A stretch of 64,000 bases of DNA, from NCBI GenBank assembly GCA_020184695.1, contig JAANOX010000237.1, positions 124,001 to 188,000 on the forward strand, written 5' to 3'. A program made the translations under genes and the position numbers. Every line of letters begins with the position of its first letter. Positions within the stretch are counted from its first letter, which is position 1. The notes under the pieces are model-generated. The model worked only from the letters and a program-made list of their open reading frames with translations. It had not been told where the DNA came from and searched no databases. Source of the DNA: Histomonas meleagridis 2922-C6/04-290x. Lineage: Eukaryota; Protista; Parabasalia. Shown here piece after piece: positions 17,891 through 54,915 of this stretch.

Positions 17891-18760
17891 TTATAAATAA
17901 ATATTTCTTATATCTTCTCGTTCAAGAAGCATTTGAACTATTTTTGTATGACCATTTAATGATGGTAAAATAAGTGCTGTTTCAAATAATTTAAATAATT
18001 TCCAAATATTATTTTGAAATATGAAATTATAAAAAGAAATTTTAAATAAAACAAATAAATATTTTAAGCATTAACATCAAACCCTTCTTGTTCAAGAAGT
18101 AATTTAACTATTTCTGTATGACCATTCCAAGATGCTTCTATAAGTGCTGTATTAAATATTTTAAATAATTTCCAAATATTATTTTGAAAAATCAAATTAT
18201 TAAAATAAATTTTAATTAAAATAAATAAATATCTTTAGCATTAATATCAATTTTTTCTTGTTTAAGAAGTAATTTAACGATTTCTGTATATACATTTTTT
18301 GAAGCATTTGTAAGAACTACAAATATTTTGAAAAAAATTTTTAAAATTTTTATGAAACAATAAAACACTTTAATAAAAATCCAATCAAATAAACAAATAA
18401 TCTTGCTTAAATCGATAGATATATATCTATTGTTAATTAAATAGTTAGAAAGTTCTACATTTCCTGAAAAACCCGAAATTTTCAAAAAATCAATTGGAAT
18501 ATGATTATCGAAGCAATGATAATATTTTTATTCATCTCCATTCCTCTTTCAATCAAAAATGAAAGAATATCAAAATTACAACAAAAAATACATTTTTCTC
18601 CTAATTTTTCTAAATCATTAACCATTTCGATTTTATTCTTAGATAAATATTTAAAGATATTATTTCGATGAAATTCAATTGCAATTTCATATGTACTTTC
18701 GAATGATGAATGATTTTGTTCACACAAATGAATAATTTCTTCATTTCCATCTACATTTTT
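17891..18760 (-). pseudogene. Degenerate DUF3447-ankyrin paralogue (locus B)
   Basis: Fragments EEIIHLCEQNHSSFESTYEIAIEFHRNDIF and GNVELSNYL match the paralogues. Ankyrin unit at 18061-18150 has an in-frame TAA (NA*N). 5' half is missing. Confidence 0.8.
17981..18230 (-). other. Two arrays of 4 x (17-nt interruption + 1 codon) in locus B
   Basis: 18151-18230 retains K-D-G-N; 17981-18060 retains K-H-G-E. Each array is exactly 80 nt. Confidence 0.9.
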
Positions 18761-19044
18761 CTTGTTGAAATATCATACGAATATAATTTATAAATAATAA
18801 ATATTTACAGAGATATTCATAATATTAATACTCTATTTTCAATACATATCTGGTCGGACCCTTAAAAAGTTGGTAGGTTTGAGCGCTTGGCAGAAAGGTC
18901 AAAGAAACTTTTTCAGATGTTTTCTGAGTGAAAACGATCGTCAACCGTATCAAAAAGATTATGAAAACATTTATCGTATTATTTCTATTTTTTAACATTA
19001 GCAGCTTAAAATAGCAAATATAAAATCAAAAATATAAACAATTT

Positions 19045-22000
19045 TTATTCATTTTCCACATTTTTAAATTTTTTAATTTGGTCCAAAAGTTCTTCTGTCA
19101 ATTTATATTCCTTTTCAAATTCTCCCGCATTTCTGTACAATTTTATTGTCACAATTCTTTGGTACAAATCAAATGGCACGTTCATATTATCCAGCCATAA
19201 CTTATTTAAGTTTAGGAATGTTCTTTGTCTTAAAATCTCACCGAAAATTATCAAGAACATGAAATATAACAATACAGGAATAGAATTTCCCCAATAAGTT
19301 TGGCTATCGTCAATATAATCTTTCGAGTGAAACAACACGTTGAACTCATTTTCACTTCTACCTATCAAATTCAACACCTCATTTTTATCTAAGTTAAATC
19401 TCCACAAATTATTACGATATCTCAATGAAAAATTTGTATCAAATGCTTGGTAATTAATTTCATTTGAATCCTCCACGTAAAAATAAAATGGAATTTCCAA
19501 TGGCATTCTCAACGTTTCATTTGAGTACAAGTAAGAATTCAACAAATTTAATTTTTGTGAATTAGATAGTTTCAAACCATTGATATTTATCGGTGAAATT
19601 ATCGAAGTTTGAATCTTATCATTAATTTTAAACTCGAAAGTAAACTTCAAATATGGCTCAATGTTCATATTCTCATTTCTCAAAGAATTTTCGAAGAACT
19701 CAATTCCATTTTCATTCAAGTTAAACTCATTCAACGAAAAAGTATTAAAAGATATAATATATATTGAGTCATGTAACAATTGTGTAGTTAATAATTCATA
19801 TTGTGGGTCATTATTTAATTCGAACAATGCTTGGAATTCATCTTCAGTAATGTGTCTTGAGTTTGAATTTGAAATTATGAACAAAGGAAAATTGGAAAAT
19901 CCAATTTCTAATTTTGTTGTATGCAAAGGTATTTGTGCATGATTAATATCGATATAAAACACGAAACCGAAAGAAGTTATTAATAGAACGAAAAATATTA
20001 TAATTATTATGATACATATTATTGGGTTTCTTTTCTTAATTCCTTCTTTTTGTTCATTATTTTTACGGATTCTACAACAAATTATAAATTCTAATTCACG
20101 TGATAACTCTTGTATTAAGTTAAAGTTATTTAATGATACTAAAGTTTTCTTACCAGCCCATAATAATAATGAATGAAACTCTAAAAGTATTGGGAAGAAT
20201 CGTAATATATAATTTGAGATTATTATATATGAATAATTTTGGATGAATGAAGGCTTTTGATATGATGTACAAATTCGACCTTTTTTACATTTATGTGCAG
20301 AAATAATATGTACAATGAAACGAATTAATATGAAAAAGATTAATGAATTAGGAAATCGTGGGAATGTCTTTAAATAAAAAAAGATTACTACTAATGTAGT
20401 TAACATATATATTAATTGTATCCAATAAAAGATAAAAATATGATCATTTAAACAACAATAATAATGTATGATCATATATAAGATATGAATTGTTAAAACA
20501 ATGAAAAATGATAATGTAAATCTAAAAAATGGTAAATTTTCCCAATTAGACCAATATAAAAATAAAATGATTAATGAGATTAAATCAAAGATAAATAATA
20601 ATGTATGATGATTACTTTCACATAATCCAAATTTACGCATCGATTTCTTTATCAGATGAAAAGCTGAATATTGTTGTGGTATATTCATTCCTAAATTATA
20701 TTCTGATTGATCCATAATACCATAACAATAACCATCAGGGAAATCAGGTAAAATCTTTTTAAACTTTTGATAATAATATGAAGGATTAAATAAATTCGAT
20801 GATCGTAACTTATTAATTACATAAAATATTGTTGCTAAATATAAAAAGATTTCAATTGCAATACTTTTTTGTGGTTCAAGTCCAATTAAACTTAATGGTG
20901 ATATTAAATATTGTGACGTCATACTATTCACTTCTTGAAACTTTTCTTCCATTAATTCGACTTTAGAAGCAGCTCTTAAACATAATATAATCGATATAAA
21001 CGCATAAAAGATTCGTGTGAAATTTGGAAGTTCTCGAATTTCTAATGAACAAAATCCATAAATAACAAAACATAATATTAAGACTGCAAATACATAAGGT
21101 CGTACAAATGCATAAATGATTGATATTAATAATAAAAAAGGTAATGATATTTCTCGTAAAAACATTGCGAAATATCGAATTAAATATTTAACAAAATCTT
21201 TATCATCAAAGAATTTAAAATCTACTAAATAACCTAATGATGTAAATTGGATTTTAAAAGATGGAGGTAAAGATAATAAAAATTCTTTTTCTCGATTTTC
21301 TAATTCGAAATCTTTTCCATGTTCATGACAATGTAAATATTTTCTCATTAATAATGTTAATGATTCTAATGTTAATACATTAATACCTGCTTCATCATTT
21401 ATTGGTAAAGTTTCTGCTAAAAATAATATGAACTTATTTAAGATAATATATATATATTGTCGATAAAAGTTATGATACCATTTATTTGAATTTTCGGTGT
21501 TTTTATTCGATTCTTTAATAATTGATTCTGATATTTGGAAATTATTGGAATCTAATGTCGAAATTTCTTGTTTATGTCGTTGATAAATAATTTCTTGATC
21601 TAATTGATCAATAATTCGTAATTCTCGTTCACGAATATAATGATATGCCATTCTTTTGGTTTTTTCGATTGATATTTCTTCATAAATTTTAGAGCTCATA
21701 ATTTTAACACATATTTTATGTAATAAAAAGATGATACACCACATATAACCTTGTTTAGAATCACCTTCAAAAGGTAAATCGAAAAATACTTTAACTCGTT
21801 CTCCTTGTGCTAATGAAATAAATATTGGCATTCTACTTAATAATTGGAAAGCTAATTTTAAATATGAATAAGAATTGATTACTATTAATGTAATATTTTT
21901 TGGTTTATCGAATAATAAATTTAAGAAAAACAAAAATGAAATTGCAATATGAAATATTAATCCATCAATCGAAGTTAATAAAGAAGAAATAATAATAATT

Positions 22001-25000
22001 GCTACTAATGTAATTTCATATATATAAAATGTTAAAGTTTTAATAAATGATTTAAATATATTTGGAAGATATTTATAATATTTATGATAATTAATTTTAT
22101 ATTGACTTAATTGGATATATAAAGTAAAGACAAAACTCGTCAAAATAGTTGTGAATAAAGAACCTGTTTGTACATCATAAATACCTAAATATTTTACCCA
22201 TTGTAAATATAATTCGACTCGATAAGGTGGTAATCGATATGTTAAATCAAATGTAGGTAATCCAGGTATAATATTTTGAGGGAATCCTAAATATAATATA
22301 TATTGAGCTAAAAAACAAATATTAAAAAATAATAATATACCTTTTGAATTATTATCTAAAAAGTTTTTGATCGATGTTAATAAAATTAAAATAATAAATG
22401 AAAATAATGCAAATACTGTTGTATTAAATATCATTGAAAAACTGATAAATCCAAATACAATTATAGGTAACATATAATGAAAGAAAACTCCAATCGCATA
22501 ATAAATTCGTAATGATTTATATTTCTTAAAATGATTTTTCTTTTTAGAAAAACTTGTTTTTGAAGGTTTGGATATAATTATAGTTAATAATAATAATAAT
22601 AACTCAAGGCCAATTGAATTAGCTTTTTTTTCAAAGTTTAAATCAGATTTACAAAAATATGTACCAAAATATGTAAGTATTCTTAATAAAAATGTTTGTT
22701 GATTATTAGGAAATACTAAATGAAATACAAATTGAATTATTATTAAAAATGTTACAAATATTAATAATGATGTTCGAACAATTGAAATATTTTTTGTTGA
22801 ATAAACACCAAAAGAAAAATAAATTAATAAAATTAATTTAATAATTGATGGATAATCATTTGTTATACTTAAAAAATATGATACTATCCATGAAATATAA
22901 TAATATATATTATAATATACACGTGATAATTCACATATAAATATATTATTACTAAAATCATAATTACTAAAATATTGTCGATTAAAAGCGATCGAACAAA
23001 AGAATAATAAAAATGATAAAAATAAATCATTATGTGTTTTAGAATTAGCAAAATTATTTATATCAACTACTTCTGAAGGTATTAAAACAGAAATTATATT
23101 TCTGGTTTCTTCAAAACGTGATAATAAATAAAAAGCTATCGTAAATACCACAACAAATCCATTAAAAATTACAGTCCATAATAACACAGTAAATTTCTTA
23201 TGATATATACATATTAATACTATACAACCTAAAAAGAAACATAATAATGAATGTAATGAAACATCGGAAAAAAACACAACTAAAAAATCAAAAATTGGCA
23301 CCAAAAAATAAAATAATATTTTCAATATTTCCGGGAAATCATTTTTCAAATATTTCTTTTGGAATGATAAAAATGTTGAAATAATAAATATTACAACTAT
23401 TTGCCAAGAATAAATATGTAAAGCTTCATTAGGTAAAAATCCAGAAATATATAATGTAGGGAAACTACCAAAATAATCTCCTTCATTTAATTTACCAGAA
23501 GCATAATACATATTAATGATTAACATAACACCAGAAATGAATTTAATAATTGGAAAGAAATAATGTTTAAATTGAATAACAAATACCATAACGATAAATA
23601 ATACACTTAATATTTGATATATCCAACGATTTTGATAAAACCCTAAATGAATTCCTAATACCATACAAACAATGACTAATAAATATAAAAATATTGTATA
23701 AAGTTTTGTAATAAAGAATTTAATAGTTTTTGTAATCTTTAATACTATTGTATTATGTATAATCGAATTCCCAATTTCTTCAATTTCATTAATAATTGTT
23801 AATTTCGGTATTTTTTTTATTATATTTATGTTTTGTTTTTGATATTTAATTCGTCCAACTTGTCCAATAAATGCTAATATCATATAACCTACAATTGAAA
23901 ATTGATAATTTCCAATGAATTTATATATCCCAAATAATTGAATAAATGATAATATTTCTTCAACGCCATCATTTTGTGGTACTGGGAACATTCCATAAAT
24001 AGTAAACACAGAAATAGCAAATGTTAATCCAAATACTAATGATAAAAATGGATAAAATCGATTTATCAAGTTCTTGAATGATGAAAAAGTCGATGAAACT
24101 ATAATTAACATAACTAAAACAGAAAAATATGAAGGGAAAAATAAGGAAAAAATAAAAATCGCAAAAAATGATAACACGACTAAGATATCAGAACTTAAAC
24201 ATAAAATGTTTGGAACGATTTTAGTGGCGCCTTTCTTCCAACCACTACATGATAATAATTGTATCGATGAATAACATAACGCAACTGCAAATATTAACTT
24301 CGCATTCCGATATTTGGTATCAGATATGAAATAATACTTAAAAAATCCGGCTTGCCATATTTCGCCAATATAACCTGAGAATAAAAACTCAACAAGTGAA
24401 TATAATAATGAATAGATTAAGACAATCCATGAAATAACTTTGTTGACAATTTCCCTACCAAAAAAAACACACGTTAAGTTGGAATAAATGTAATATAAAA
24501 ATAATGGCAATATTGAAAATGATAAACTGGTCGATAATAAAAATCCAATGGAAATGACATTAACAATGTCACAGATAAATTTTAAGTATAAGTTGTCAAA
24601 AATGGTTTTGCGATATTGATTTAAGCCTTCAATCGAAGATTTTGGTATAATCCCAATTATTATGCTGTTGGAAACAATGTGTAAAAGTGATGAAACCATG
24701 GCAAATATTGAGTCCTTAGTAAGGATAGTAGGATATGATATGCCAATTATTTTGGCTGCTTCACTATCCATTGGATCTGTAGTTGATACAACTGAAAATA
24801 TAAATAACACAATAGAAATTATTATTTCAATGTAAACAATAACAGTAATTTGTTTAAACGAATTGAAACGTGTAATTTGATTTGAAAATGTAACATGTAA
24901 AATTAATAAAAGTAAATATACTAAACCAACAATAGAAGTGGTTGAAAGAGCAGTACATGAAATTATGATGGGTGTTGTAAAATCTAATACAAAATGTAAA

Positions 25001-25143
25001 TAAAATGGATGAATTGTATTAAATTTTAATGGCGCTTCTTCTGCTTTCGGCTCTTTACTGAGATCCCCTTGAGCTACGATTTCATAAAAACTTTCTGATG
25101 ATTCAAAAACGCCTGAGGAAGATGAATCAGATTTCAGAAACAT
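19045..25143 (-). CDS. Divergent Piezo-family mechanosensitive channel homologue
   Basis: 2032-aa, very TM-rich. Anchor-like FPILLEFHSLLLWAGKKTLVSLNNFNLIQEL and CTD-like IKLYRNAGEFEKEYKL resemble Piezo PFLxELR..DW...TTLSL and LVRETGELELEE. Confidence 0.75.
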   Translation of the reverse strand: MFLKSDSSSSGVFESSESFYEIVAQGDLSKEPKAEEAPLKFNTIHPFYLHFVLDFTTPIIISCTALSTTSIVGLVYLLLLILHVTFSNQITRFNSFKQITVIVYIEIIISIVLFIFSVVSTTDPMDSEAAKIIGISYPTILTKDSIFAMVSSLLHIVSNSIIIGIIPKSSIEGLNQYRKTIFDNLYLKFICDIVNVISIGFLLSTSLSFSILPLFLYYIYSNLTCVFFGREIVNKVISWIVLIYSLLYSLVEFLFSGYIGEIWQAGFFKYYFISDTKYRNAKLIFAVALCYSSIQLLSCSGWKKGATKIVPNILCLSSDILVVLSFFAIFIFSLFFPSYFSVLVMLIIVSSTFSSFKNLINRFYPFLSLVFGLTFAISVFTIYGMFPVPQNDGVEEILSFIQLFGIYKFIGNYQFSIVGYMILAFIGQVGRIKYQKQNINIIKKIPKLTIINEIEEIGNSIIHNTIVLKITKTIKFFITKLYTIFLYLLVIVCMVLGIHLGFYQNRWIYQILSVLFIVMVFVIQFKHYFFPIIKFISGVMLIINMYYASGKLNEGDYFGSFPTLYISGFLPNEALHIYSWQIVVIFIISTFLSFQKKYLKNDFPEILKILFYFLVPIFDFLVVFFSDVSLHSLLCFFLGCIVLICIYHKKFTVLLWTVIFNGFVVVFTIAFYLLSRFEETRNIISVLIPSEVVDINNFANSKTHNDLFLSFLLFFCSIAFNRQYFSNYDFSNNIFICELSRVYYNIYYYISWIVSYFLSITNDYPSIIKLILLIYFSFGVYSTKNISIVRTSLLIFVTFLIIIQFVFHLVFPNNQQTFLLRILTYFGTYFCKSDLNFEKKANSIGLELLLLLLTIIISKPSKTSFSKKKNHFKKYKSLRIYYAIGVFFHYMLPIIVFGFISFSMIFNTTVFALFSFIILILLTSIKNFLDNNSKGILLFFNICFLAQYILYLGFPQNIIPGLPTFDLTYRLPPYRVELYLQWVKYLGIYDVQTGSLFTTILTSFVFTLYIQLSQYKINYHKYYKYLPNIFKSFIKTLTFYIYEITLVAIIIISSLLTSIDGLIFHIAISFLFFLNLLFDKPKNITLIVINSYSYLKLAFQLLSRMPIFISLAQGERVKVFFDLPFEGDSKQGYMWCIIFLLHKICVKIMSSKIYEEISIEKTKRMAYHYIRERELRIIDQLDQEIIYQRHKQEISTLDSNNFQISESIIKESNKNTENSNKWYHNFYRQYIYIILNKFILFLAETLPINDEAGINVLTLESLTLLMRKYLHCHEHGKDFELENREKEFLLSLPPSFKIQFTSLGYLVDFKFFDDKDFVKYLIRYFAMFLREISLPFLLLISIIYAFVRPYVFAVLILCFVIYGFCSLEIRELPNFTRIFYAFISIILCLRAASKVELMEEKFQEVNSMTSQYLISPLSLIGLEPQKSIAIEIFLYLATIFYVINKLRSSNLFNPSYYYQKFKKILPDFPDGYCYGIMDQSEYNLGMNIPQQYSAFHLIKKSMRKFGLCESNHHTLLFIFDLISLIILFLYWSNWENLPFFRFTLSFFIVLTIHILYMIIHYYCCLNDHIFIFYWIQLIYMLTTLVVIFFYLKTFPRFPNSLIFFILIRFIVHIISAHKCKKGRICTSYQKPSFIQNYSYIIISNYILRFFPILLEFHSLLLWAGKKTLVSLNNFNLIQELSRELEFIICCRIRKNNEQKEGIKKRNPIICIIIIIIFFVLLITSFGFVFYIDINHAQIPLHTTKLEIGFSNFPLFIISNSNSRHITEDEFQALFELNNDPQYELLTTQLLHDSIYIISFNTFSLNEFNLNENGIEFFENSLRNENMNIEPYLKFTFEFKINDKIQTSIISPININGLKLSNSQKLNLLNSYLYSNETLRMPLEIPFYFYVEDSNEINYQAFDTNFSLRYRNNLWRFNLDKNEVLNLIGRSENEFNVLFHSKDYIDDSQTYWGNSIPVLLYFMFLIIFGEILRQRTFLNLNKLWLDNMNVPFDLYQRIVTIKLYRNAGEFEKEYKLTEELLDQIKKFKNVENE

Positions 25144-25655
25144 AGGGAATGAAAACCGTTAAAAATCCGAGTAAAGTTTATAATCACCGTATTTTTCTGA
25201 GTATATTTATCGTTACTTTAGAATAAAATTTAAATCATTTTTCATTTGATTAATCAAACATATTTCATGAAATTAATTTACTAAATTAATAAAAACAATT
25301 AAAACATACTAAATGACCTAAAAAATTCATGTAATTTTTCTTATATAGAAATAATTGATTTTTTAATTAATTTATTACACAAATGAAAAAATGTTTATTT
25401 ACTTAAAATCTATTATTCCTAGTGTATTTACATCTTCCAAGATTACAAATGAACCAGAAAGCATGAAACGGCATCTGTGGTTGATCAATGACCTACTTTT
25501 GGAAGTCTTAGGCATGGGTAACAAAAATACCCAGTAAAATTTAAATTTTTAACATGGTTAGGTGTAACATTAAAACAGAAAATCTTAACGAATATATTAT
25601 AAAGTTTATATTAAAAAACCATTATAAAAAGCTTTTTACAATCAAAAATCATTTT

Positions 25656-25731
25656 TGAAGGGGCACCCCTTCATTCAATTTTTGAATACTTTGAATATAG
25701 TGGAACTTTTTGATCGGACCGATCAGAAAGT
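25656..25731. repeat. Two adjacent GC-rich inverted repeats
   Basis: TGAAGGGG-CA-CCCCTTCA (25656-25673) and ACTTTTTGATCGG-A-CCGATCAGAAAGT (25705-25731, one G-T mismatch). Confidence 0.75.
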
Positions 25732-26070
25732 GGCGTTTCAAAATTTTCCGAGTTGGAAAGAATAAAATGTAAAGATAGCACGATGCATACTTCGTTCAGT
25801 GCAACTTTTCCATAAATTTAATTACTTTTCTTATCATATATTAATGGAGCCAATATATGGTATTGATATTGATGAACTGATTGAAAAAATTGGCGGGGAA
25901 GATGAGAAAAAAAAGAAAATCAAAAAAAGATGAATTATAAATGCAACACAATTTCATGTCATCATTGGGAGATACATTGCATCAGCAAAGCTTGTTAAAA
26001 GGTAAAAACTATTATATAGTTAATGTCAACTTTTATGAATAATTAATATCAAATGAATGGTTTCAATATT

Positions 26071-28069
26071 TTATAAAATATTTTTATCATTAATATCAAT
26101 TCCTTCTTGTTCAAGAAGTAATTCAACTATTTCTGTATGACCTTTTTCAGATGCACAAATAAGTGCTGTTTTAAATAATTTGAACAATTTCCAAATATTA
26201 TTTTGAAACAAAAAATTATTAAAAAAAAATTTTTAAATAAAACAAATGAATATCTTTAGCATTAATATCAATTCCTTCTTGTTCAAGAAGTAATTCAACT
26301 ATTTCTGTATGACCATTTAAAGATGCATTAATAAGTGCTGTATTAAATAATTTGAATAATTTCCAAATATTATTTTGAAACAAAAAATTATTAAAATAAA
26401 TTTCATTTTTAGCATTAATATCAATTCCTTCTTTTTCAAGAAGTAATTTAACTATTTCTGTATGACAATTTAAAGATGCATTAATAAGTGCTGTTTCAAA
26501 TAATTTAAATAATTTCCAAATATTATTTAAAAATCCAAAATTATTAAAATAAATATTAAATAAAACAAATGAATATCTTTAGCATTAATATCAATTCCTT
26601 CTTTTTCAAGAAGTAATTTAACTATTTCTTTATGACAACTTAAAGATGCATTAATAAGTGCTGTTTCAAATAATTTAAATAATTTCCAAATATTATTTTG
26701 AAATATAAAATTATTAAAATAAATTCTAAATAAAACAAATAAATATTTTTAGCATTAATATCAATTCCTTTTTGTTCAAGAAGTAATTTAACTATTTCTG
26801 TATAACCATTATTAGATGCTTTCATAAGTGCTGTTTCAAATATTTTAAATAATTTCCAAATAGTATTTTGAAATATCAAATTATTAAAATAAATATTAAA
26901 TAAAACAAATGAATATCTTTAGCATTAATATCAATTCCTTTTTGTTTTAAAACGTATTCAACAAGTTCAATATTTCTTGATCCAGATGAAAATACCAAAA
27001 TATTATTCGGTATTGAATGATCTTTAAGTAAATATTCAACTGAAAAAATATTTCCAATCGTTGCTGCTTCGTTAATAATATCATCATTGATTTTCATTCC
27101 TTCTTTAACTAAAAATGAAAATATTTCATAGTTATGATATGAAATACAAAGCTTTCCTAATTTTTCTAAATTATAAATTTTTTTTAATTTATTCTCATAA
27201 GTATATTTAAAGATATCATTTCGATGGAATTGAATTGCTATTTCATATGCATCTTCAAATGATGAATGATTTTGTTCACATAAATGAATAATTTCTTCAT
27301 TTCCACCTGCAATTGCATATTTTCCTGTATTTTCTACTTTTGCATTGTTCAAGAGTAAATATTTGAAGCATTTAATAGATCCAAAGAATGCTGAATAATC
27401 AATTAATGAAACATTATCTTCATTAATGAATGGACATATTTCATAGAGTGATGGTTCTATATATTGATCAAAATCAAAATTTGTTTGTGATGATATTTCT
27501 TGAAGTTTTTCTGTTTCATCATTTCGAATTATTTTCGCAATTTCATTTGGATTATGTCCTTCTCTAATTAATTTCTGATGTAATTCCCAATCATTCTTTG
27601 AAAGCTCTTCATAATTTGGTAAGGCACTTACATATTCCCTTAAATGAATTGCTAATTCTTCTTTAGACATATAATGTGCAAAATAAGCACTCTGGTTGTT
27701 TTTTACAATGTTCGGTTCAAGAAAATTATGTTCAATCATAGCTTCAAGAAGATAATATGATTCATGTGTATGCTCATTATTAAGAAATTGACCAAATATA
27801 TCAAATATATTGGATTTGATTTTATTACTCTCTTCAAATGTTCTTATTTCTTTTATAATATTCAAAAATAAATCTATATTATTATTTTTAATTACAAAGG
27901 AATAATATATCATTTGAATAATAATTAAATCATAAGATAAAGGATGGATTTCATCAAATTTATTGATTATTAAACCTAAAGATCTAGAGAAATTTTCTTC
28001 ATTCAAACCAAAAATTGCTTGATTTATTGATAGAAGTGTTTCCCAGTCGCAACCTTCCTTTGGCCTCAT
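26071..28069 (-). CDS. DUF3447-ankyrin repeat protein (locus A), interrupted by 19 short non-GT/AG segments
   Basis: ORF 26876-28069 encodes a DUF3447-like region and ends just after GIDINAKD. Five more 90-nt ankyrin units follow (26745-26834, 26575-26664, 26405-26494, 26252-26341, 26080-26169). The 3' end at 26071 is uncertain. Confidence 0.8.
26170..26914 (-). other. Five arrays of 17-nt interruptions with single-codon spacers (locus A)
   Basis: 26835-26914 (4 elements; NDGE), 26665-26744 (4; RYGE), 26495-26574 (4; NWGE), 26342-26404 (3; EFGN), 26170-26251 (4, one 19 nt in homopolymer runs; KFGK). Confidence 0.92.
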
Positions 28070-28169
28070 GTGGAAAATATTAATAATGGATATAATTCAA
28101 ATTTGAATTAAAATTTGAGAGTATAAACTAGTGAAAAAGTTGAATTTTCAAGCAAAAATTTACAAGAGA

Positions 28170-28960
28170 CCGTTTGTTTACGATGGGTTATTTCCTTTCA
28201 ATCGTTGGAGGACGTTTACTGTGATCAACAAAAACGCTTGTTAACTGGCGAATACATAAAGTTTCTATTTCCATGTTTGATCTGTATTACTGGATTTAGT
28301 ATCAAATCATCATATCGTTCACTTCGTGCATGGAAAGTAAAAATTTAAGGTGAAGACTGTGATCCCACCACCACATTTCGAACAAAGGTGGTCAATCACT
28401 TAATGGTGAAGACAAGAAATTTGGTGTTACCTTGATAAGTTTATTACTACAAATAAAGTCAAGATAATTCAAAAAGGTTCTCATTGATCTAAAACTAAAT
28501 TTGTTTGTATTAAGATCTTTGAATTATTTTTGGATCAACCAGAGTTGTTGGAGGCGTTTTCGTAAAATGATTAAAAGCAAATGGGGACTCACGTTGAGCT
28601 GATGTTTACATTACTTCATCCAATTTTGATTTCCGTCGCTTTCATAAGCTATCACCACACATTCTCTTTGTACAAGGAACTATGCTAACTAATCTTGGTT
28701 TGAACCAATACGAACTAACAAAAGGAAAATCTGTTGTCCAAGGATCAAACGATTTGGACTGTTATAGGTCAAATAAGTACAACAAAAGGCGAAACAGCTT
28801 TGTTTGTTGCGAGAGAATATAACTCGATAAACTACTTAAGTACATAATGAAATGGCGTTAGAAGAAAAGAAGTTGCGATTTAGGATTGCAGCATGTGATG
28901 CACATCATGGCGATGAACACTTTGATAAATGGCTTATTACTTTAGCAGCTTATCACGAGC
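28170..28960 (+). pseudogene. Probable decayed coding relic of unknown family
   Basis: Higher GC than flanks, with protein-like fragments (FVYDGLFPFNRWRTF; MALEEKKLRFRIAACDAHHGDEHFDKW) broken by stops and frameshifts. Confidence 0.35.
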
Positions 28961-29174
28961 ACGTGTTGAAGAAGTAGATAAAATTAATAAAATGTAATAC
29001 AATGAATAATTTAAACCAAAATAAAAAAGTACAATTGTAACACGATCTAACATAAAACAGAACCGAAATGTATGATGTTTATAGATTTTTTTACTACAAT
29101 CTTCAATATGATAGTGATTCACTATGTGATAGCTTTTTGACCGTTTAAAAAATCTGCTCAACCACATCAAAAAA

Positions 29175-38401: not shown

Positions 38402-38422
38402 CTGTCCGGTTTCAGGTAGAAA

Positions 38423-38448
38423 AAGTGACGAATGTGATGTGATGTGAT
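38423..38448 (-). promoter_or_regulatory. Clustered initiator-like (TCAY) elements upstream of the SPP gene
   Basis: Minus strand reads TCACATCACATCACATTCGTCACTT about 22-47 nt upstream of the ATG, resembling the trichomonad Inr TCA(Y)(W). Confidence 0.35.
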
Positions 38449-43107: not shown

Positions 43108-43413
43108 ATATGTGTGTGTAAAAATGGAATTGAAATGAAAAGAGAATTATCATATGAATAAGGATTAGAGAAGGCAAAAAAAATTAATGCATTTAAATTT
43201 GAAGCAAGTACACTTACAGGCGAAGGTGTTGACAACGTGTATGAAAGCATCGTAAAAACATCAATAAGTAAAGCAACCAATTTAAATGATTTAGATATGT
43301 TAAAAGTCTTCAAATTTATACACAATAATAAACAAAAAGAGATAACATTTCGAAAAAATAATTTTGTTGAAACAGCAGTTTACTCACCAAATAAAAAATT
43401 ATTTCTATTTTAA
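43108..43413 (+). pseudogene. Small GTPase (Rab-like) C-terminal relic
   Basis: Plus strand reads KRELSYE*GLEKAKKINAFKFEASTLTGEGVDNVYESIV, with in-frame TAA at 43159-43161. G4 is degenerate and no G1/G3 was found. Confidence 0.6.
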
Positions 43414-44735: not shown

Positions 44736-45324
44736 TGTTTAAAGTAACAGTCTACGCTAAAAGCATAACAGCAAATACAGAAAGTTATGTTTTTGATTAA
44801 AGATGATTTGTTTACAATGATCTTGAATTTATTCATTATTTTTTTTTTAAAGAAACTTAGTTTCAGCATTCAACTTTTCTTTTTTATTATTGTCCGCAAA
44901 TAAACAAAAAAAATTACATAGATCCTATGTAAGTCAAATGAGAATTAAAATTAAAAAAAAATAAACATTTTTTTAAAAGGAAATTAGAAAAAACAAAGAC
45001 TATGAAACAGTTGTATGAAGTTTATTTATAATATAAATGCGTTTGGTACTAATTAATATTAGGGAATTCTATGATGTTAGTTGATAAATTTGTGGCTCAG
45101 AAACAGTTTGCTCACCATATTTTCAGATGTCCCAAACTAATATCTCTTCACCGCATAAAAATACATACTTAATGAGGCTTAGCAACCCAACAAAAAATGA
45201 ATACGACCATGGCGGTTATAAAATCACGTTTATTTTAACGTTCATTTCAAAAAATTGACAAAGATAGTCAAATTTTTGACTTGCTTTTAATTTTAAACGT
45301 ACTTTATGATTTTCTGATCTTTTC

Positions 45325-46050
45325 ATGAATCTTGATTCTACAATCTGTTCTATAGCTGCTTTAAAGCAACGAATAGAAGAACTTGAAAGCGAAAAATTAG
45401 AATTGGATAATGAGTTAACTGAATATCAAAGTCAAATCCTTGAACTCAAAAAAGATGTCCTGAATCAAGAAATATTATCAAAAGCGACAAAGAATGCACT
45501 TAACATGATAAAGGAATCAAAAGCAATTCGCTCCCAAATTGAAGCTGAAAGGGAACTTAATGCACAATTGAAAAATGAATTAAAAACCGCAGAAGAAACT
45601 TTGTATAAACTTAAAAACAACCCAGTCACAGTTGAAAAAGATGATAAAGACGCTTTACGTGTAATTCAAAACATCAATGAATATCAAAAATTAACAGCGC
45701 AGATACTCAAAGATTATTTTCCGTCCACATTTTTCAAATCAACTTTAACACCAAATGAGAATACAAGTCGATATGATATTGATTTACTTCCAACTGATCA
45801 ACGAAAAATTGTAAAACGTCTTCGTGAACTCCCTTCGAATTACCCTCAACAAAGCAATCAAGTCAAACATGCGATTCTACAAGGAATGGTGTTTACTCTT
45901 CAAATAGCAGATGATTTAATTCAAAGTATATGCTCTCTTAAGAGCCAACAGTCCTACTCCATGACACCTGCGTCTATAGAAACCCAGATCATACCTTTAA
46001 CATATCAACTTAAAGTAATTTTTAACGAATTGAAACGTTTTTCTTTCTGA
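45325..46050 (+). CDS. Coiled-coil hypothetical protein
   Basis: 241-aa ORF with a heptad-rich N-terminal half. Confidence 0.7.
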   Translation: MNLDSTICSIAALKQRIEELESEKLELDNELTEYQSQILELKKDVLNQEILSKATKNALNMIKESKAIRSQIEAERELNAQLKNELKTAEETLYKLKNNPVTVEKDDKDALRVIQNINEYQKLTAQILKDYFPSTFFKSTLTPNENTSRYDIDLLPTDQRKIVKRLRELPSNYPQQSNQVKHAILQGMVFTLQIADDLIQSICSLKSQQSYSMTPASIETQIIPLTYQLKVIFNELKRFSF

Positions 46051-46259
46051 GACGGGTTCCAAGAATCTCTAAATTGTGTTTAAATAAAGTAAAAAGCGTA
46101 TTTTTTGTTCTAATTATGGTTTTATGCATAGCAAAAGTTTGTTACGGATTTTGTTTCTGAAATAACAGTTAACTGCTTTTTTAGTTTCAAAAATTTTGTT
46201 TGTTTCAGAATTTTCAACAAGACATTTTAATTTGAATCAAAGTATTTTGACATTGGAAC

Positions 46260-47144
46260 ATGGAAGAATCGTCAGATGACATAGAAGACTATATTGATTA
46301 TCAAGTTGAATGGGAGGACAGAAGTAATTGTGCTTGCAACATAGCATATTTTCCAGTTGGTGGGTTTTACATTATAAATCATTGGCGTAAAAAATTTTTG
46401 CGTCCAATTCTTTCAAACATAGCTTTTATCATTATATTTGCAGACTTAGTATTTGATCTTTATTATTCACTTAATTTTAAAGAGTATATAATTTCGCTAG
46501 TGTTTTGTTCACTTGCATTTTTAGCGACAGCTGTTTCATATTGGCTAATTATTGTTATAGGTCCGGGATATGTACCATATAACTGGAAGTTAACACATAA
46601 AAAGCGATTTACATGGAAAGAAAGGATGAATTATATCACAATATACGACCAACAAGTTCAATGTGCCAGAATGTCCGAAAGGCCAGCAAGGTCATCTTTT
46701 TCCTTGGATGCAAGAAGGTTTGTTCTTCGAGCAGATCATCTATGCATTTGGACAAATTCATGGATCGGATTTAAAAACCATCGTTACTTCATTTTATTTA
46801 CACTCTGGTTTGTTATTTATAGCTGTCTTTGGTTTGCTTGCAGATATAACTGGTATCTTTTAATTCCACAACTTCATTGGTATTATCTTATATCAGCTGC
46901 TTGTGCAATCGTTCTTATAACAGCTGCTAGTTATTCATTTTATTACTTGGTTAAGTCGTTGATAAATCTAAAAAATAACATCACGGGAATCGAAAAGTAC
47001 AATCGAAGGAACGTTAAAATGTACGATAAAGGCTGTATGAACAACTTTGAAGAAATCTTTGGAACAAGGAAGTGCATCATATGCTGGTGTAACCCTTTTT
47101 GTCCAGTTCCACGTGTCCATGATGGTTTTTATAATTCATATTAA
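46260..47144 (+). CDS. DHHC-family palmitoyltransferase, variant DHLC motif
   Basis: Four TM segments, GPGYVP, RADHLCIWTNSWIGFKNHRYF, ITGIE (TTxE-like), C-terminal YDKGCMNNFEEIFG. Confidence 0.88.
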   Translation: MEESSDDIEDYIDYQVEWEDRSNCACNIAYFPVGGFYIINHWRKKFLRPILSNIAFIIIFADLVFDLYYSLNFKEYIISLVFCSLAFLATAVSYWLIIVIGPGYVPYNWKLTHKKRFTWKERMNYITIYDQQVQCARMSERPARSSFSLDARRFVLRADHLCIWTNSWIGFKNHRYFILFTLWFVIYSCLWFACRYNWYLLIPQLHWYYLISAACAIVLITAASYSFYYLVKSLINLKNNITGIEKYNRRNVKMYDKGCMNNFEEIFGTRKCIICWCNPFCPVPRVHDGFYNSY

Positions 47145-47673
47145 ATTTTGTTAATGTTTTTTATTTGTTTCTAATTTTTGAGGGAACTGTGTTCGAATTT
47201 AAAGACAAGGTCTAAGTGAAGTGAAAAACTGACACTATAAACATAAATTTTCAGCATCTGTTCCATACAATTCTAAAAAAAATATAAACATAATAATATA
47301 CATTGTAGGTTAATCTTAAATATTATGTATCATGAAAATATATCAATTTTTTGAAAAAATATTTCATCATTATTTTTTTCACATTAATAATTAATTAAAG
47401 AAATAAAATGAATCATTAATTTTCAATAACGGAAATGGAATTAATTATCGAGACATTGCTAAAATAAAGAAATTCAGAAAAATATTATGAAAATTATTTG
47501 GTATATATCACAAGATTGGGCGTTAATTTAAAATATATATATATAGATCTATATTTAAAGATTCTCTCACATCATAACAAGAAACAATATGAATATAAAA
47601 TGCTTTAATTTAATATTTTTTCATAAATACTTTCACTTAATCAATAAATTTTACTTATTCATTAAAAGCAAAC

Positions 47674-50600
47674 TTACAAAAATCTTGCTCCAAAAAGAAA
47701 TGCTGGATTTGCTTCAGCAAATTTCGGTTTCGGTGCACCCCAACCACCAAATACTTGATGTGCTTGTTTTGTTTCTGATGCCAAAAGTTTTTCATCGTAT
47801 ATAATATCATTTTGCTTCTTAAGTAATTCCACAATATTTTTACAATTTTCATTACCTCCTTGATTTGAGTTTGCGAGCATAATTGCTGATTCACCGTTAT
47901 TATTTACTTCATTTATTTTTATATCTTTTTGTTGAAGAAGTAATTCTACGATTTCAAAACAACCATTTTGCGCAGCGCCCATTAAAGAATTCATAAATAA
48001 TTTTCATAAATTCCGAAGTTTTTATATAAATTTTAAAAAATTATAATAATTATTATTCTTATGATTTATATCGATTTCTTTATGATCGAGTAATAATTTA
48101 ACGATTTCCAAATGATTATTAAAACATGCTAACATAAAAGCAGTACCAAAATAATTAATTAAATTCCAAATTTTATCTATAAATTCCATTTTTTATTAAT
48201 AAACATATAATACTTATAATAAATACCATGAATGTCCAGATCAATTCCTTCATGTTCAAGTAATAGTTTAACTATATCTGTTCTTCCTTCTGAACAAGCA
48301 GTCATTAATGGTGTAAAATATATATATATTTAATTCCAAATATTGTTTTGATATAGAAATATTTTGAATCAATAATATAATGAAATAAATAAACAGATTT
48401 CACATTAACATTAACATCTTTTTTATCAAGAATTAACTTAAAGATTTCGAATTGATTCTTTTTAACTTCTTCAAAATTTGCTTTATTGTTAACAAATCAA
48501 TAAAATAAATCTTAACACGTGTAAATAAATTTGGCTTATTATTATCATTTCCTTGAGAATATTTCATATCGAAATGACATTGATCAGTTTTAGATGCACA
48601 ATGAGAATTCATAAAAATTATAAATAAATCAATTAACAAATAAAAAAACTCTAAATTATCAAAATTAATTCTAAACTCACAAAATGAACTTCGAAAAATT
48701 AAAGTAAACCAATTTGTTTTGATTTGGATTATAAAATGTATTATTATGTTTGTATAAAGACATTTTATGAAGTACAGTTTCAAATGATTGAATGAAATTC
48801 CAAATATTATTTCGAAATATTAAAAAGGCGGAACAAATCGTATTCAGAAGATTAACATCAATTCCTTTATGATCAAGAAGTAATTTAACAATTTCAACAA
48901 AACCTGCAATCGTTGCATACATTAAAGGTGAACCGAATGAATTAAATATATTTCACGAAATTTATCAATGAAATATTAAACTTAAGAAATGAATATCAAC
49001 AAAATTAACATCAATTTCTTTATGTTCAAGTAATAATTTAACAATATCAATGTAGTTATTACGTACAGCAAAAGTTAAAGCTGTTTCAAATAAATTAAAT
49101 TGTTTCCAAATAAAATTTAAAAACATAAAATTAATAAAATAAATTTTAAAACATATTATTAAATAGTTTTAGCATTAATATCAATATCTTTTTGTTCAAG
49201 AAGTAATTTAACAATATCAACACTGCCTTTCCATGTTGCAAAAATAAATGGGGTTTCAAAAAATGGAAACAATTTTTAAAAATATTTTAATATTATATTT
49301 ATTACATTTGTTAATATCAATTCCCTCAACATTAAGAAGAAGTTTCACAAGATCAACATTACCACTATTACATGCATAAAACAATGGCGTTAAAAAAACA
49401 ATAGACAAATTCCAAAGTTTGGAGTAAAACATTGAATTTATAAAACAAATATCGAACAAAAAAATGAAACATTTGCAATATTTATATCAATACCTTTACA
49501 TTCAAGAAGTAATTTGCATATTTTTATATAATTATTTTCAAATGCAAATGTTAATGCAGTTTTTCCTCTAGTATTTTGTTGTGAAATATCAATTCCTTTA
49601 TGTTGAAGAAGTAATTTAACTATTTTTGTATGACCATTTGAAGATGCTAAAATTAGCGCTGTATAAAATATTTGAAATAATTTCCAAATATTATTTTGAA
49701 ATATCAAATTATTATAATATATATTATTTTTAGCATTAACATCAATTCCTTCTTGTTCAAGAAGTAATTTAACTATATCTGTATTACCTTTATAAGATGC
49801 AAACATAATTGCTGTTTTAAATATTTTTAATAAATTCCAATAATTATTTTAAAATATTAAAATATTCAAATAAATAATATCTTTAGCATTAATATCAATT
49901 CCCTTTTGCTCAAGAAGCATTTTCACGTTTTCAATGTTATTTAAAGCACAAGCACAAAATAAAGGGGTTTTATAAAAGCACAAGAAACTCTACTAAATAT
50001 TCTCAACAAACATTAAAAAAACAAAAACAAATATCATAAATATTAACATTAATAGCTTTCCTCGATAAAACATATTTCACAAGTTCACTATTATTTGAAG
50101 AAACAGCATAAGCTATTGCATTATTTGGTAATGCTTTTCCTTCATAAAGATATCTTACAATGAATAAGTTACCACTTGCAAAAACTTCTTCAACGAATTG
50201 AGCATCATAAATATTAATTCCTTCATTTTCGATGAACAAAAAGATATCAAAGTTATCATATTGTATACATTTCGAACCCATATAATTTATTATTTTTATT
50301 TTCTTTTCTTCTTCACTTTCATTATTTCTCATTTGGTTCTGAGAAAATGTTATTGGATTTTGGAAGTTAAAATAACGCAGACATTTTCTTATAAACATAG
50401 TTCTTTCCTGATTATAATCGCATTTGAATAATTTATTTTCATATAGATAATAAAAGATATCATTTCGATGGAACTTAATTGCTGCTTTATAAGCGTTTCC
50501 AAATGTTACACCATTTTGTTCACATAAATGAATGATTTCAATGTTTCCACCTGCTACTGCATATTTACCAACATTTTCAATATAAGCACCATTAACTAAC

Positions 50601-51370
50601 AAATATTTAAAACATTTAATCGACCCATAAAATGCTGCATATTGGATTAATGTAACAGGATGTTCATCACAACTAAAACATTTGGTGAATTTCTCATAAA
50701 TTGATACTGGTAATGGCTCATCAATATCAATTTTATTGTTTGATATTATTTCTTGAAGTTGTTCAGCATCATCATTACGTATAGCTTTTGTGACTTCAGA
50801 AGGATTTCCTTCGTTCATGTTCTTTTTATGTTCTTCAAAATTACTTCCTTTTTGTTGACGAATGATTTCAATAGCTTTCTGTTCCCCAAAGGAGGGTTGT
50901 GCTTTTTGAGCTTGATTTTCAATTGATGAAATTTGTTCTTTTGTTAATAAATGAACAAAGTATATCTTGTTTTCTGGGTGATCAATAAATTGATCAGGTC
51001 TTATTAAATTATTTTCAACTAATTTAACTAATATAAAATTGGACTCTCTAATACCCACTGAAAGTAAATAACTTTTAAATAGTGAAAATATTTGTGGACT
51101 TTCTTTGAGAATTTCTTCTTCCTTTTTTTCAATAAATTGTAAATATTGTATATAGATATTTATATCTTTACGCTGTGATAGATATGATGAATAAATATTT
51201 CTTATTAGAACCAGATTAAATGAAATTGGAAAATTAGTATCAAATAAATCCATGGTTAATTGAACAGTCAATTCAATGTTTTCTTGATTTAAATCAAAAA
51301 GTAAATTACTAATATCTTGAAGATATTTGATTTCTTCTTTGGGATTTCTTGTTGTCATTTTGTTGTCCAT
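47674..51370 (-). CDS. DUF3447-ankyrin repeat protein (locus C), one gene interrupted by 42 short segments; 993 aa after removal
   Basis: 3697 nt minus 41x17 and 1x18 nt leaves 2982 nt = 994 codons, with no internal stop in my manual translation. This joins ORFs 50003-51370, 49438-49806, 49256-49459, 48677-48922, 48433-48783 and 47674-47994. Confidence 0.85.
47992..50032 (-). other. Twelve arrays plus one singleton of 17-nt interruptions (locus C)
   Basis: 49969-50032 (NSRK), 49816-49878 (INGK), 49663-49725 (NDGY), 49391-49470 (DNGL), 49255-49300 (KYKE), 49085-49164 (KYGE), 48932-48994 (NREG), 48779-48841 (TNGE), 48613-48709 (5 elements), 48494-48510 (single), 48315-48394 (YSGF), 48145-48224 (YGGG), 47992-48054 (NKGM). 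Confidence 0.9.
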
Positions 51371-51649
51371 TGCCTGAAAAAAACGTTAAAAAAGTGCCTT
51401 GGCATGGATTGCATAGCTTCTATCAGAGTAGTGTAAACGAAATTAATTCATATTTTTCTCTGAATGGAAATTAATAAATTCATTTTAGATATATAAAATA
51501 TCTCTTTATATATGTAGAGATTAATATTATCATTATCTAATATTGCAATGCCTTAATTAATATTTCGGAAATGAGGGAAAATCAATTCATTATGAAATTT
51601 TCTCAAATGAATATAGTTTCTCATGAAAATATCATTTTCAATTTGAATT

Positions 51650-52490
51650 TTGAAAATATTAAAAAAATCAACAAAATCAATTGATGAATTTGATAAAAAA
51701 TATGATTGGGAATTTCATAAACAATTAATTAAAAAAGGAGTAAATCCTAATGAAATTACAATAATAATTCGAAATTATGAAATAGAAAAACTTCAAGAAA
51801 TATCATCACAAAATGATTTTAAATTTTTGGATCAATTATATGTTTTAGATATTTAATTATGAATGGTGTTAAAGTCGGCAAATATTCATTTGCAGGTGGA
51901 AATGAAGTAATAATTCATTTATGTGAAAATAATAATGGATCATTTTATGAAGCAGCAATTGAATTTCATTGAAATGATATCTTTAAACACCTTTATGAAA
52001 ATAAAATTGTTAAAACGATAAATTTAGATTACTTATATAAGTAATGTATTGTCAATAATTCATTTAATTGTGTAGGAAGGATTGAATTTAGATTCTTTCA
52101 TATATGAATTATCATTGACTGGAATTTATATCTAATAAAATGTTTTCTTGAAAAATATAAACTACTAAATGATATTTATTTCATGAGCAAGTCCAGGAAA
52201 TATTGAACTTGTTGAATATTTTCTTAAATTTGAACAAACTGATATCAATGTTAGAAAAGTTTCTATAAAAAATTGGGAATTTGTTGATATGTCATTATAT
52301 TTAATATGAGTATTTGGCTATTTTTTATGTTTTTTGATATTTATTTGAAAAATTTTATACCCTTATATAATATTTGGAAATAATTTATATTATTTAATAC
52401 ATCAGTTATTAAAGCATTTAAAAATGCTCAAATAGAAATAGTTAAATTGCTTCTTGAACAAAAAGGAATTAATGTTAGCTGGAGGGTCAA
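51650..52490 (+). pseudogene. Degenerate DUF3447-ankyrin paralogue (locus E)
   Basis: WEFHKQLIKKGVNPNEI, GGNEVIIHLCE, AAIEFH*NDIF and GNIELVEYFL fragments with stops and frameshifts; one ankyrin unit starts at 52399. Confidence 0.8.
52259..52398 (+). other. Array of 7 x (17-nt interruption + 1 codon)
   Basis: 140 nt = 7 x 20. Retained codons GGA TAT GGC GAT TAT GGA AAT precede ACA (Thr). Confidence 0.85.
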
Positions 52491-52918
52491 AAAACCAACA
52501 TTTGTATAAATTTTAAAAATGCGATAAAATAGATATCATTGAGATCAGTAAATTTTTCAGAGGTACTAAAACTCAAAATCATGCAATATTTTTTCAACGA
52601 TAATTATATGTTAATAATGGCATCGGTAGGAGATTACAAAAATATTTTTGTTATGAAATTTTGACTGTTAAATCTTTCCAAATTCGATATGATTTCGACC
52701 ATACTTTTTTGGGAATTTTGTGATATTTCCTATATAGTAATATTGTATGTTAGATATGTTTATTTTCTAAATAATTATCTTGTATTATTTTTATTAAAAT
52801 TTAGAAAGTGTGGAACTCAATTTAAAAAAAAAAATTAATTGAAAAATTGTTATTCGAAAACTTAACTTTGGTTTATATGATGAGATAAAAAGATTTTATA
52901 TTTGTTGACTATAAGTTT

Positions 52919-54915
52919 TTACTGTTTATTGTTTTTTTCTTTATCATTGAATAATTTAACTATTTCTTCGTAACCTTTAATTGTTGCAATCATGAGTGGA
53001 GTTAATAATAATTTGCATGAATATCAAATATCAGTTTGAAACATAAAATTGATTAAATTAACACTAAATATAATAAATTGATAGTATAAGTATGAATTAC
53101 TATTCCCTCTTGTTCAAGTAATAGTTTAACAATTTCAGTTTTTCCACATTCACATGCAACTAAAAGAGCTGTTTGAAGAAAAATGAATAAAATCCAAATA
53201 TCATTTTGAAAAGTCATTTTTTACAATTAAATATTATATACTTTAAATATATATCTTTAGCATTAATATCAATTCCTTTTTGTTTAAGGAGCAATTTTAT
53301 AATGTCAATATGACCATATCTAGTTGCCAGCATTAAAGCTGTCCATAATAATTTATAAAAATTCCAAAACTTATTTTTAAGCATTAAATTATTCTATTAA
53401 ATATTGAACAAAATTTTAAAATATCTTTGTTATTAATATCAATGTCCTTTTGCTCAAGAAGTAATTTGACAACATCAGTACATCCATTAAGTGATGCATT
53501 CATTAAAGCTGTTTTAAATTCTTTGAATAATTTCCATTAACAATTTTAAAATATAAAGTTATTAAAATATATTTTGTTCAAAACGAATAAACATCGCTAA
53601 TATTTATATCAATTCCTTCTTGTTCAAGAAGCAATTTTACAATTTCTATATGACCATTTTTTGTAGCAATTATAAGTGCAGTTTGAAATAATATAAAGAA
53701 TTTCCAAATATTACTTAAAAACTTCACATGAGTAAAATTAAAACTTTTTTCATTTATATTAATACACTTTAGATCGATGACATATTTAACGAGTTCAACA
53801 TTTCCTGACAATGAAGAAAAAATTAAAATATCTTTCGGAACAGGTTTCTTATTAAGGAAATATTTAACAAGAAATATATTTCCAATATTAGCTGCTAAAT
53901 TAATAAATGATTCTTCAATATCCATACCTTCTTTTTCCAAAAAATAAAGAATTTGATAATTGTTACATTTAATACAAATTTTTCCCAGTTTGTTTATATT
54001 GTCAATTTTAGACATTTTATTCTCGTAAAGATAATGAAAGATATCATTTCGATGAAACAAAATTGCAGTTTCAATAGTTCCTTCGAAAGATAAATGATAT
54101 TGTTCACAAAGATGAAACATTTCTATGTTACCACCTGCAACAGCAAATATTCCTGAATTATAACTTGCTCCGTTTAGTAACAAAAATTTAAAACATTTAA
54201 TTGATCCAAAAAATGCTGCATAATCAATTAACGAAACTTTTTCTTGATTAATAAATGAACATCTTTCATAAATTGAAGGACAAATTATTTGATTAAAATT
54301 AAAATCATTTTGTGATGATATTTCTTGAAGTTTTTCTATTTCGTCATTTCGAATTATTTTTGCTATTTCATTCGGATTAACTCCTTCTTTAATTAATTGC
54401 TTATGAAGTTCCCAATTATTCTTTGATAGTTCTTTTATATTATCAAAGAAATCTCTACTATGGTAGTATCTAGCTAATCGAAAATCTTCAAATTCTTCAT
54501 TACTTAGAAAATGTGAAAAATAAAAAGATTTATGTTTTTTGCTTTTTATAACTTGAGATGTGATTAATTTATATTCATACAACTTTTCAAGAAGAAAATT
54601 AGATTCTTGAGAATCAGAGCAAAGAAGAATTGTTGTAAATATATGAATTAGCTTGAAATCATTTTTATTGATTTTTTCTTTTTCTTCAATTTCCTGGAGA
54701 AAATGAATACAAATATCGAATTCATTCACGTTTGAACTAAAGCTTAAAAGAAATAATTGACTTAGAACAGTATTGAATGAATATACTAAATTATCATCAA
54801 ATAAATTCATAATCGATTCAATTGATGAATTAAAATTATCTTTATTTAAGCCAAAAACAATTTGTTCCATCAGTAGTAAGATATCATCAGTGATATTTTG
54901 AAATGACGCCTTCAT
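52919..54915 (-). CDS. DUF3447-ankyrin repeat protein (locus D), interrupted by 19 short segments; 557 aa after removal
   Basis: 1997 nt minus 19x17 = 1674 nt = 558 codons. Ankyrin units at 53593-53682, 53423-53512, 53253-53342, 53083-53172, then a terminal unit ending at TAA 52919-52921. Confidence 0.85.
53003..53742 (-). other. Five arrays of 17-nt interruptions (locus D)
   Basis: 53683-53742 (60 nt, 3 elements, EGQ), 53513-53592 (KYGK), 53343-53422 (NNGW), 53173-53252 (NDGQ), 53003-53082 (SYDL). Confidence 0.9.

Follow-up and report, generated by a model that had tools for sequence, protein, structure and literature searches.

The window analysed in this study is a stretch of 64,000 nucleotides (nt) of Histomonas meleagridis (assembly GCA_020184695.1, contig JAANOX010000237.1). 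It is AT-rich (20-37% GC) and contains long open reading frames (ORFs) without introns. Five loci of the window carry genes of the DUF3447-ankyrin family which are interrupted by elements of 17 nt, and these elements are the subject of the present work. Locus D (52919-54915, minus strand) is a DUF3447-ankyrin gene with Pfam matches, an ATG at 54915 and a stop near 52919. Locus B (26071-28069, minus strand), also a DUF3447-ankyrin gene, contains junctions with 4, 4, 4 and 3 elements and one junction of 82 nt. Its close relative, locus A (17891-18314, minus strand), is a fragment of about 2.5 units from the DUF3447-ankyrin family with two four-element junctions and an in-frame TAA at 18066-18064. 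The long ankyrin gene of locus C (47674-51370, minus strand) comprises about 16 units with 0, 2, 3 or 4 elements per junction; its middle part (48400-48900) is degenerate and the segmentation there is uncertain. Locus E (51590-52500, plus strand) is a degraded gene of the ankyrin family with several breaks. At 52259-52395 (plus strand) it includes seven elements in series, with GGA, TAT, GGC, GAT, TAT and GGA between them.

Read back from the T-A-L motif, an interrupted ankyrin loop consists of the D/N codon followed by n repetitions of a 17-nt element plus one codon, which gives a register of 20 nt. This period was already described in the initial annotation of the sequence, and all junctions named there fit the register. 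The loops spelled by the retained codons correspond to the ankyrin consensus, for example D-N-D-G-Q-T, D-N-N-G-W-T and D-K-Y-G-K-T. Neighbouring ankyrin units are located 102+17n nt apart (n = 0, 2, 3, 4) in 15 of 16 adjacent pairs (binomial p = 5e-18 against 1/17). The paralogous copies are related and do not represent independent events, therefore this value mostly measures the preservation of length. The sole exception, a spacing of 172 nt, belongs to the 82-nt junction of locus B (26173-26254, minus strand), in which the second element reads 19 nt within a T-run. The extra letters are due either to a homopolymer error of the assembly, which is based on Oxford Nanopore Technologies (ONT) sequencing, or to a change breaking the last repeat. 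After removal of the elements in silico, locus B can be read through four junctions before this one is met. For locus D the removal of 19 elements resulted in one ORF of 557 amino acids (aa) that comprises five regular repeats and closes with a normal stop.

The codons on the grid differ from the letters around them. No stop was found among the 52 grid codons of the window and 44 of relatives, as had been claimed at first for the retained codons, and their GC content is 31-33%. In the same comparison, offsets within the elements showed 3-12% GC and up to 10 stops. The conserved penultimate glycine of the first description was recovered as well, as 12 of the 13 four-element junctions have Gly as their third retained codon. 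By a dynamic programme guided by an ankyrin profile, 87 elements were placed in loci A-D; locus E contributes another 7, in agreement with the earlier estimate of about 95 in five loci. This programme works in clean junctions and misplaces elements in degenerate stretches. A second programme, based on codon usage, failed to place the elements, since codons rich in AT are frequent in this genome as well. Compared with the four-element junctions next to it, a three-element junction is shorter by precisely their first 17 nt. Non-ankyrin genes were also scanned for single elements whose removal would rejoin ORFs, and none was found; apart from ankyrin sites already known, the scan gave two spurious antisense matches within the purine-rich region.

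The elements have a GC content of 8%. The consensus of 66 elements shows a purine at position 1, T at positions 2-4, A at positions 5 and 14 and T at positions 15-17, with ends that are mostly AT...TT. GT was found at the 5' end of 10 elements. AG was detected at none of the 66 3' ends, and G never occupies the last position. Unique placement is possible for 24 of the 66, and none of these 24 has the ends GT-AG; the uniquely placed elements confirmed by RNA end in AT-TA, GT-AC and AT-TT. A branch motif (ACTAAC or CTAA) is absent from the elements. This agrees with the earlier statement that known parabasalid introns are of the GT-AG type with a branch motif, which holds according to the literature (PMC12316389), and that the elements lack both. 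Matches to the element motif occur at 10 per kb on the sense strands of the ankyrin genes versus 0.4 per kb in other ORFs, a 25-fold difference.

The elements are cut from RNA precisely and one by one, leaving exons of one codon. For this comparison, public contigs of the RNA runs X1-X3 and of the DNA run X6 were aligned to positions 48000-53999; for the same organism, four runs classed as RNA and several classed as DNA contain the region. The depth profiles are those expected of RNA and DNA. Over the intergenic positions 51400-51599 the depth in X3 was 3 versus 100-800 over genes, and the unique contigs of X6 were flat with a depth of 480-580 (single-copy level about 530). The unique parts of locus C showed an RNA depth of about 40-480 across the three RNA runs. 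Removal of a whole junction was found in RNA contigs at three junctions with 68 nt lost at each, together with two single deletions of 17 nt. These 17-nt gaps, as expected in data at the level of complementary DNA (cDNA), are present at 53235 (X2) and at 48494 (X1). For both single deletions the depth in X6 was 0, with not every joint of X6 being counted. Contigs of X6 span junctions 4 and 5 of locus D whole and junctions 2 and 3 partly, and the elements are present in them at single-copy depth. Element-free DNA, as known from the elimination of internal eliminated sequences (IES) in ciliates, was accordingly not found among the X6 joints that were counted.

The five junctions of locus D (all minus strand) can be described individually. 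At junction 1 (53686-53742) three elements are predicted solely from the register (53742-53726, 53722-53706 and 53702-53686), with GAA and GGA between them and CAA following. Junction 2 (53516-53592) consists of the elements 53592-53576, 53572-53556, 53552-53536 and 53532-53516 with the micro-exons AAA, TAT and GGA, then AAA. In X3 a joint 53515->53593 was detected with TCCATATTT in between, the reverse complement of AAA TAT GGA, so that 68 nt are gone (depth 1491.7). At junction 3 (53346-53422; elements 53422-53406, 53402-53386, 53382-53366 and 53362-53346; micro-exons AAT, AAT and GGA, then TGG) X3 shows a joint 53346->53422 with CCATTAT in between. Together with two flanking aligned bases these letters yield AAT AAT GGA, and again 68 nt are gone at a depth of 1491.7. 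At junction 4 (53176-53252) only the first element, e1 (53252-53236), is removed, and e2-e4 are retained in the same contig. The corresponding omission of 17 nt at 53235 was found in X2 with a depth of 165/165 and in X6 with 0. This contig is a partly spliced form, in which the next junction is fully spliced. At that junction 5 (53006-53082; elements 53082-53066, 53062-53046, 53042-53026 and 53022-53006; micro-exons AGT, TAT and GAT, then TTA) 8 letters stand in place of 76 genomic nt (53006-53081) in contigs of X1 and X2. Here 68 nt are gone, the flanks are free of mismatches and the replacement fits AGT TAT GAT.

Single elements also occur outside the loops. The lone element ATTTATTTTATTGATTT (48494-48510, minus strand) is located in locus C between two long exons. 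It was omitted in X1 (101/101) and kept in the dominant contigs of X3 (0/478) and X2; the DNA value was 0/1165. The frames join across this element, and its excision may differ between samples of one study or may be inefficient. The partly spliced contig and the lone element between long exons show that each element is a separate unit. As the excision of each one is exact and links the codons on either side, a four-element loop is read from four one-codon exons.

Comparable results were obtained for the whole family. In each RNA run 21-37 contigs exit the conserved exon at 49723/49724 into TAT GGA AAA ACA GCA CTT ATG, which encodes Y-G-K-T-A-L-M. DNA contigs run on into element sequence at this position. 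RNA contigs of locus E cease to align at 52259, exactly where the first of its predicted elements begins.

The element-free RNA contigs might derive from other genomic copies, such as retrocopies, with the interrupted loci being decaying pseudogenes. Loci A and E do look degraded. The family that includes the conserved ankyrin exons and the piece of the N-terminal domain in locus E is very large: contig depths summing to 1e5-1e6 were recorded in RNA and DNA runs alike at 49600-49800, 51600-52000, 52400-52600 and 53200-53400, among them conserved exons. However, the spliced contigs have flanks identical to loci C and D over 150-190 nt, and the paralogues differ by 10-40%. The depth of 0 in the DNA run for two single deletions, the elements carried there at single-copy depth and the existence of a partly spliced contig also argue against such copies. 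Furthermore, the exact length of 17 nt survives 43% divergence and is common to other organisms. We regard an origin from element-free copies as very improbable.

It was also considered that the elements stay in the mRNA, where the ribosome hops over them or where versions of 51 nt are translated as loop insertions. Three-element junctions are in frame, and some of them are free of stops. Four-element junctions, in contrast, cause a frameshift and include stops. Known bypass elements persist in the mRNA, and here RNA without elements is abundant. Since the removed form is carried by RNA contigs and not by the DNA run, removal occurs in RNA and a ribosomal bypass is unneeded. Of the two routes left open in the initial annotation, removal from RNA is upheld; retention in the mRNA with skipping by the ribosome or translation of the elements is very unlikely.

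Finally, the deletions could be artefacts of template switching by reverse transcriptase or of contig assembly. Repeats and a high AT content mark the region, and the contigs were built from k-mers. On the other hand, no microhomology was found at the ends of the elements, and 24 of the 66 can be placed uniquely. Four successive deletions each leave exactly one codon, the same events were seen in different runs and the ORF of 557 aa is restored. An artefact is extremely unlikely.

The interrupted loops vary in a characteristic way. Elements of locus D differ at 43% of sites and all are still 17 nt long. Between the recent copies in loci A and B, differences were found at 32% of sites in micro-exon codons, 6% in elements and 10% in exons. 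Fisher's test gave p = 1e-8, although the pairs lack independence. Variation falls on the codons at the three x positions of D-x-x-G-x-T, and Gly is constant. The elements may have spread along with the duplication of ankyrin repeats; their length and motif would be conserved, and the single codons between them would encode fast-changing residues of the ankyrin binding loop.

The same spacing of 170 nt and the same grid were identified in contigs from metagenomes and in one Logan assembly (L002-L004, L007, L008), with loops such as N-K-D-G-N-T. The Gly in the grids of these relatives is written GGA, GGG or GGT, a synonymous variation which is the pattern expected if this codon is translated. 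For the NSA2 encoded by L007, no NCBI-named sequence among the matches listed exceeded 60% identity, and an exact copy is known from ENA only. Thus, L007 and also L008, which has the same ankyrin gene, probably belong to another organism. A second contig of H. meleagridis (L001, JAANOX010000047.1, 4001-6600) shows the grid as well. There, the annotated model P0138 of 428 aa stops where the interrupted ankyrin units start, and the units run on unannotated for more than 1 kb. The ankyrin family is probably truncated systematically in the public annotation. At the homologous locus of Tritrichomonas foetus (L006) no clear 17+3 grid could be detected. In this locus (7600-7830, TRFO_38572) ankyrin loops contain an in-frame GT...AG stretch of 45 nt and an insert of 88 nt (5x17+3), which disrupts the reading frame and leaves the gene model split. 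These inserts may or may not be related to the 17-nt system.

Taken together, the 17-nt segments very probably form a lineage-specific, intron-like class in nuclear protein-coding transcripts whose members are excised individually. Several points weigh against this interpretation. The RNA status of the runs is an automatic guess, the data are assembled contigs and not reads, and the RNA comparison covers loci C, D and, indirectly, E only. In some contigs unspliced forms prevail (48494-48510 in X3; e2-e4 of junction 4), and excision may thus be inefficient or under regulation. The information content of the motif is only about 7 bits, and ordinary ORFs contain 12 matches of at least 8 bits. Part of the specificity would therefore have to be supplied by the strict length, by the scarcity of G and C or by an unseen factor. 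A fixed length near that of the smallest spliceosomal introns (15-21 nt) fits the spliceosome no less than a pathway without it.

Recognition would rest on the element itself, i.e. on a weak AU-rich signature (a purine, UUU and A on the 5' side, A and UUU on the 3' side) with almost no G or C. The strict length of 17 nt may serve as a ruler, and recognition would need neither GT-AG ends nor a branch motif nor a conserved fold of the RNA. A pathway without canonical spliceosomal recognition is our leading guess. Excision by cutting and ligation independent of the spliceosome comes close to an even chance in our judgement, and other machinery seems rather unlikely. A wider proposal is more tentative and in our view improbable: Histomonas and relatives would possess a length-measuring cut-and-ligate system for nuclear mRNAs, independent of the spliceosome, which would allow hypervariable codons of the ankyrin loop, as exons of their own amid conserved 17-nt spacers, to be diversified or shuffled singly.

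A conserved fold was looked for. RNAalifold predicted 0 pairs for 13 junctions. In single folds the structures differed, with z-scores between -1.3 and +0.5, and weak AU helices could escape this detection. A bulge-helix-bulge (BHB) fold at the exon-intron borders, as in tRNA splicing, was not found. No conserved stem-loops of the IRE1 type, with G-containing loops at both cut sites, were found, and the borders contain little or no G. As no conserved structure was found, the BHB and stem-loop models were set aside. Pairing of the ends as in euglenids does not apply to the elements, since 5' RTTT and 3' ATTT are non-complementary and the length is fixed at 17.

Alternatively, the elements are ordinary spliceosomal introns at the physical minimum of size, and the major spliceosome of this lineage has relaxed end requirements and tolerates AT/GT...TT ends. 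Precise removal with joining of exons, as for U2-type introns, was observed: the RNA contigs show joints and 17-nt deletions, the letters in between equal the predicted codons and the DNA run has none of this. The narrow, fixed length lies near the smallest known spliceosomal introns, most elements have a purine at position 1 and T at position 2, and type B introns of trichomonads are likewise T-rich with variable 5' motifs. However, AG is missing from the 3' ends of all 66 elements, and the confirmed unique ends are those given above. The parabasalid 7-nt 5' motif and 12-nt ACTAA branch/3' motif were not found in the elements (17 nt, 8% GC); as given for T. vaginalis they add up to 19 nt, which is too long for 17 nt. 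The 5' site ATATCCTT and the branch site TCCTTAAC of U12-type (AT-AC) introns were not detected either, the consensus being RTTTA...ATTT with C nearly absent. Moreover, the window contains two candidates for canonical parabasalid introns, which begin with GT and close with ACTAAC...AG, one of 27 nt upstream of the CSE1 ORF (28698-28724, plus strand) and one of 100 nt upstream of the Rpt5 ORF (45069-45168, minus strand). If both are real, two kinds of introns coexist in this genome. A spliceosome with relaxed requirements is a serious possibility, which we place below an even chance.

The remaining genes of the window are single intact ORFs, encoding a VWA protein, a Piezo-like protein, CSE1, a lipase, a signal peptide peptidase, a kinase, a BspA-type leucine-rich repeat (LRR) protein, Rpt5 and a DHHC protein. 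The ORF 19045-25143 (minus strand, 2032 aa) contains a Piezo cap domain (E = 7e-8), which suggests a Piezo-like channel in a parabasalid. An ORF of 1852 aa (55966-61524, plus strand) without Pfam match lies in a strongly purine-skewed region with a GC skew of up to 0.59 and an AT skew of up to 0.71. The window gave no hits in scans for Rfam families and tRNA genes.

If excision as proposed is true, a class of nuclear mRNA introns exists with a fixed length of 17 nt and without GT-AG ends, branch motif or fold. This bears on the minimum that is needed to define and excise an intron. The ankyrin genes of H. meleagridis would then be truncated in the present annotation, as P0138 (428 aa) exemplifies. 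In the genome paper of this organism introns are described as scarce and ankyrin genes are not mentioned; with truncated ankyrin annotation, gene counts and 'intron-poor' statements for the group would need revision. An excision machinery specific for the parasite would be relevant for a poultry pathogen without approved treatment. In addition, fast-changing codons amid conserved spacers suggest an unexplored route to the diversification of binding surfaces.

In full-text searches of the literature no published description of a 17-nt system was found, in accordance with the first assessment that none has been described. A 2026 review of non-canonical splicing covers non-canonical sites, micro-exons, recursive and trans-splicing as well as tRNA/IRE1 splicing, and nothing in it resembles the 17-nt elements. 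In translational bypass (T4 gene 60; byps of yeast mitochondria) short non-coding inserts in ORFs are also skipped as coding gaps. Those inserts persist in the mRNA, whereas the 17-nt elements are absent from RNA contigs. Endonuclease-ligase splicing, i.e. of tRNA by BHB recognition and of HAC1/XBP1 by IRE1, resembles the present system in its short introns of about 11-26 nt, the non-GT-AG ends and the measurement by ruler or structure. Such introns depend on either a bulge-helix-bulge or paired stem-loops whose loops contain G, whereas the elements have 8% GC and no conserved fold. Nonconventional introns of euglenids are likewise nuclear mRNA introns without GT-AG and with an unknown excision machinery. 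They are variable in length, and their ends pair, which brings the exons together. The elements differ in their fixed length and in that no pairing of the ends is predicted.

Micro-exons of 3-15 nt are known from animals and plants (PMC13149111). As here, exons down to 3 nt are in frame and code for residues of surface loops. In animals and plants they are isolated between long GT-AG introns, whereas up to seven tandem 3-nt exons stand between non-canonical elements of 17 nt in H. meleagridis. To our knowledge, these up to seven 3-nt exons in series are the densest packing of exons and introns. The introns of Stentor (15-16 nt) and of the Bigelowiella nucleomorph (18-21 nt) are similar to the elements, being AT-rich with a length fixed near the physical minimum. 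These minimal introns keep GT-AG, and we know of no tandem arrays split by single codons among them. As smallest spliceosomal introns, 15 nt for Stentor, 18 nt for Bigelowiella and 23 nt for Trichomonas have been reported (cited in PMC12316389).

The closest comparison within the phylum is offered by the type B introns of trichomonads, which are 23-28 nt long, T-rich and uniform in length with variable 5' motifs (PMC12316389). They always carry GT...AG and a 5' motif, their CTAA branch site is fused to the 3' site, and they occur once, rarely twice, per gene with about 60-80 per genome. No known trichomonad intron is shorter than 23 nt. All 63 introns of T. vaginalis keep GT/AG, the 7-nt 5' motif and the 12-nt branch/3' motif, 19 nt in total (PMC12316389). 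Type B introns and the elements share the very short, uniform length, the richness in T and the precise removal from mRNA. In contrast, the elements are 17 nt long with mostly AT...TT ends, have no branch motif, reach up to about 40 per gene and stand beside exons of 3 nt. They look like a new class of introns; if the spliceosome is responsible for their removal, they are instead an extreme variant of the known kind.

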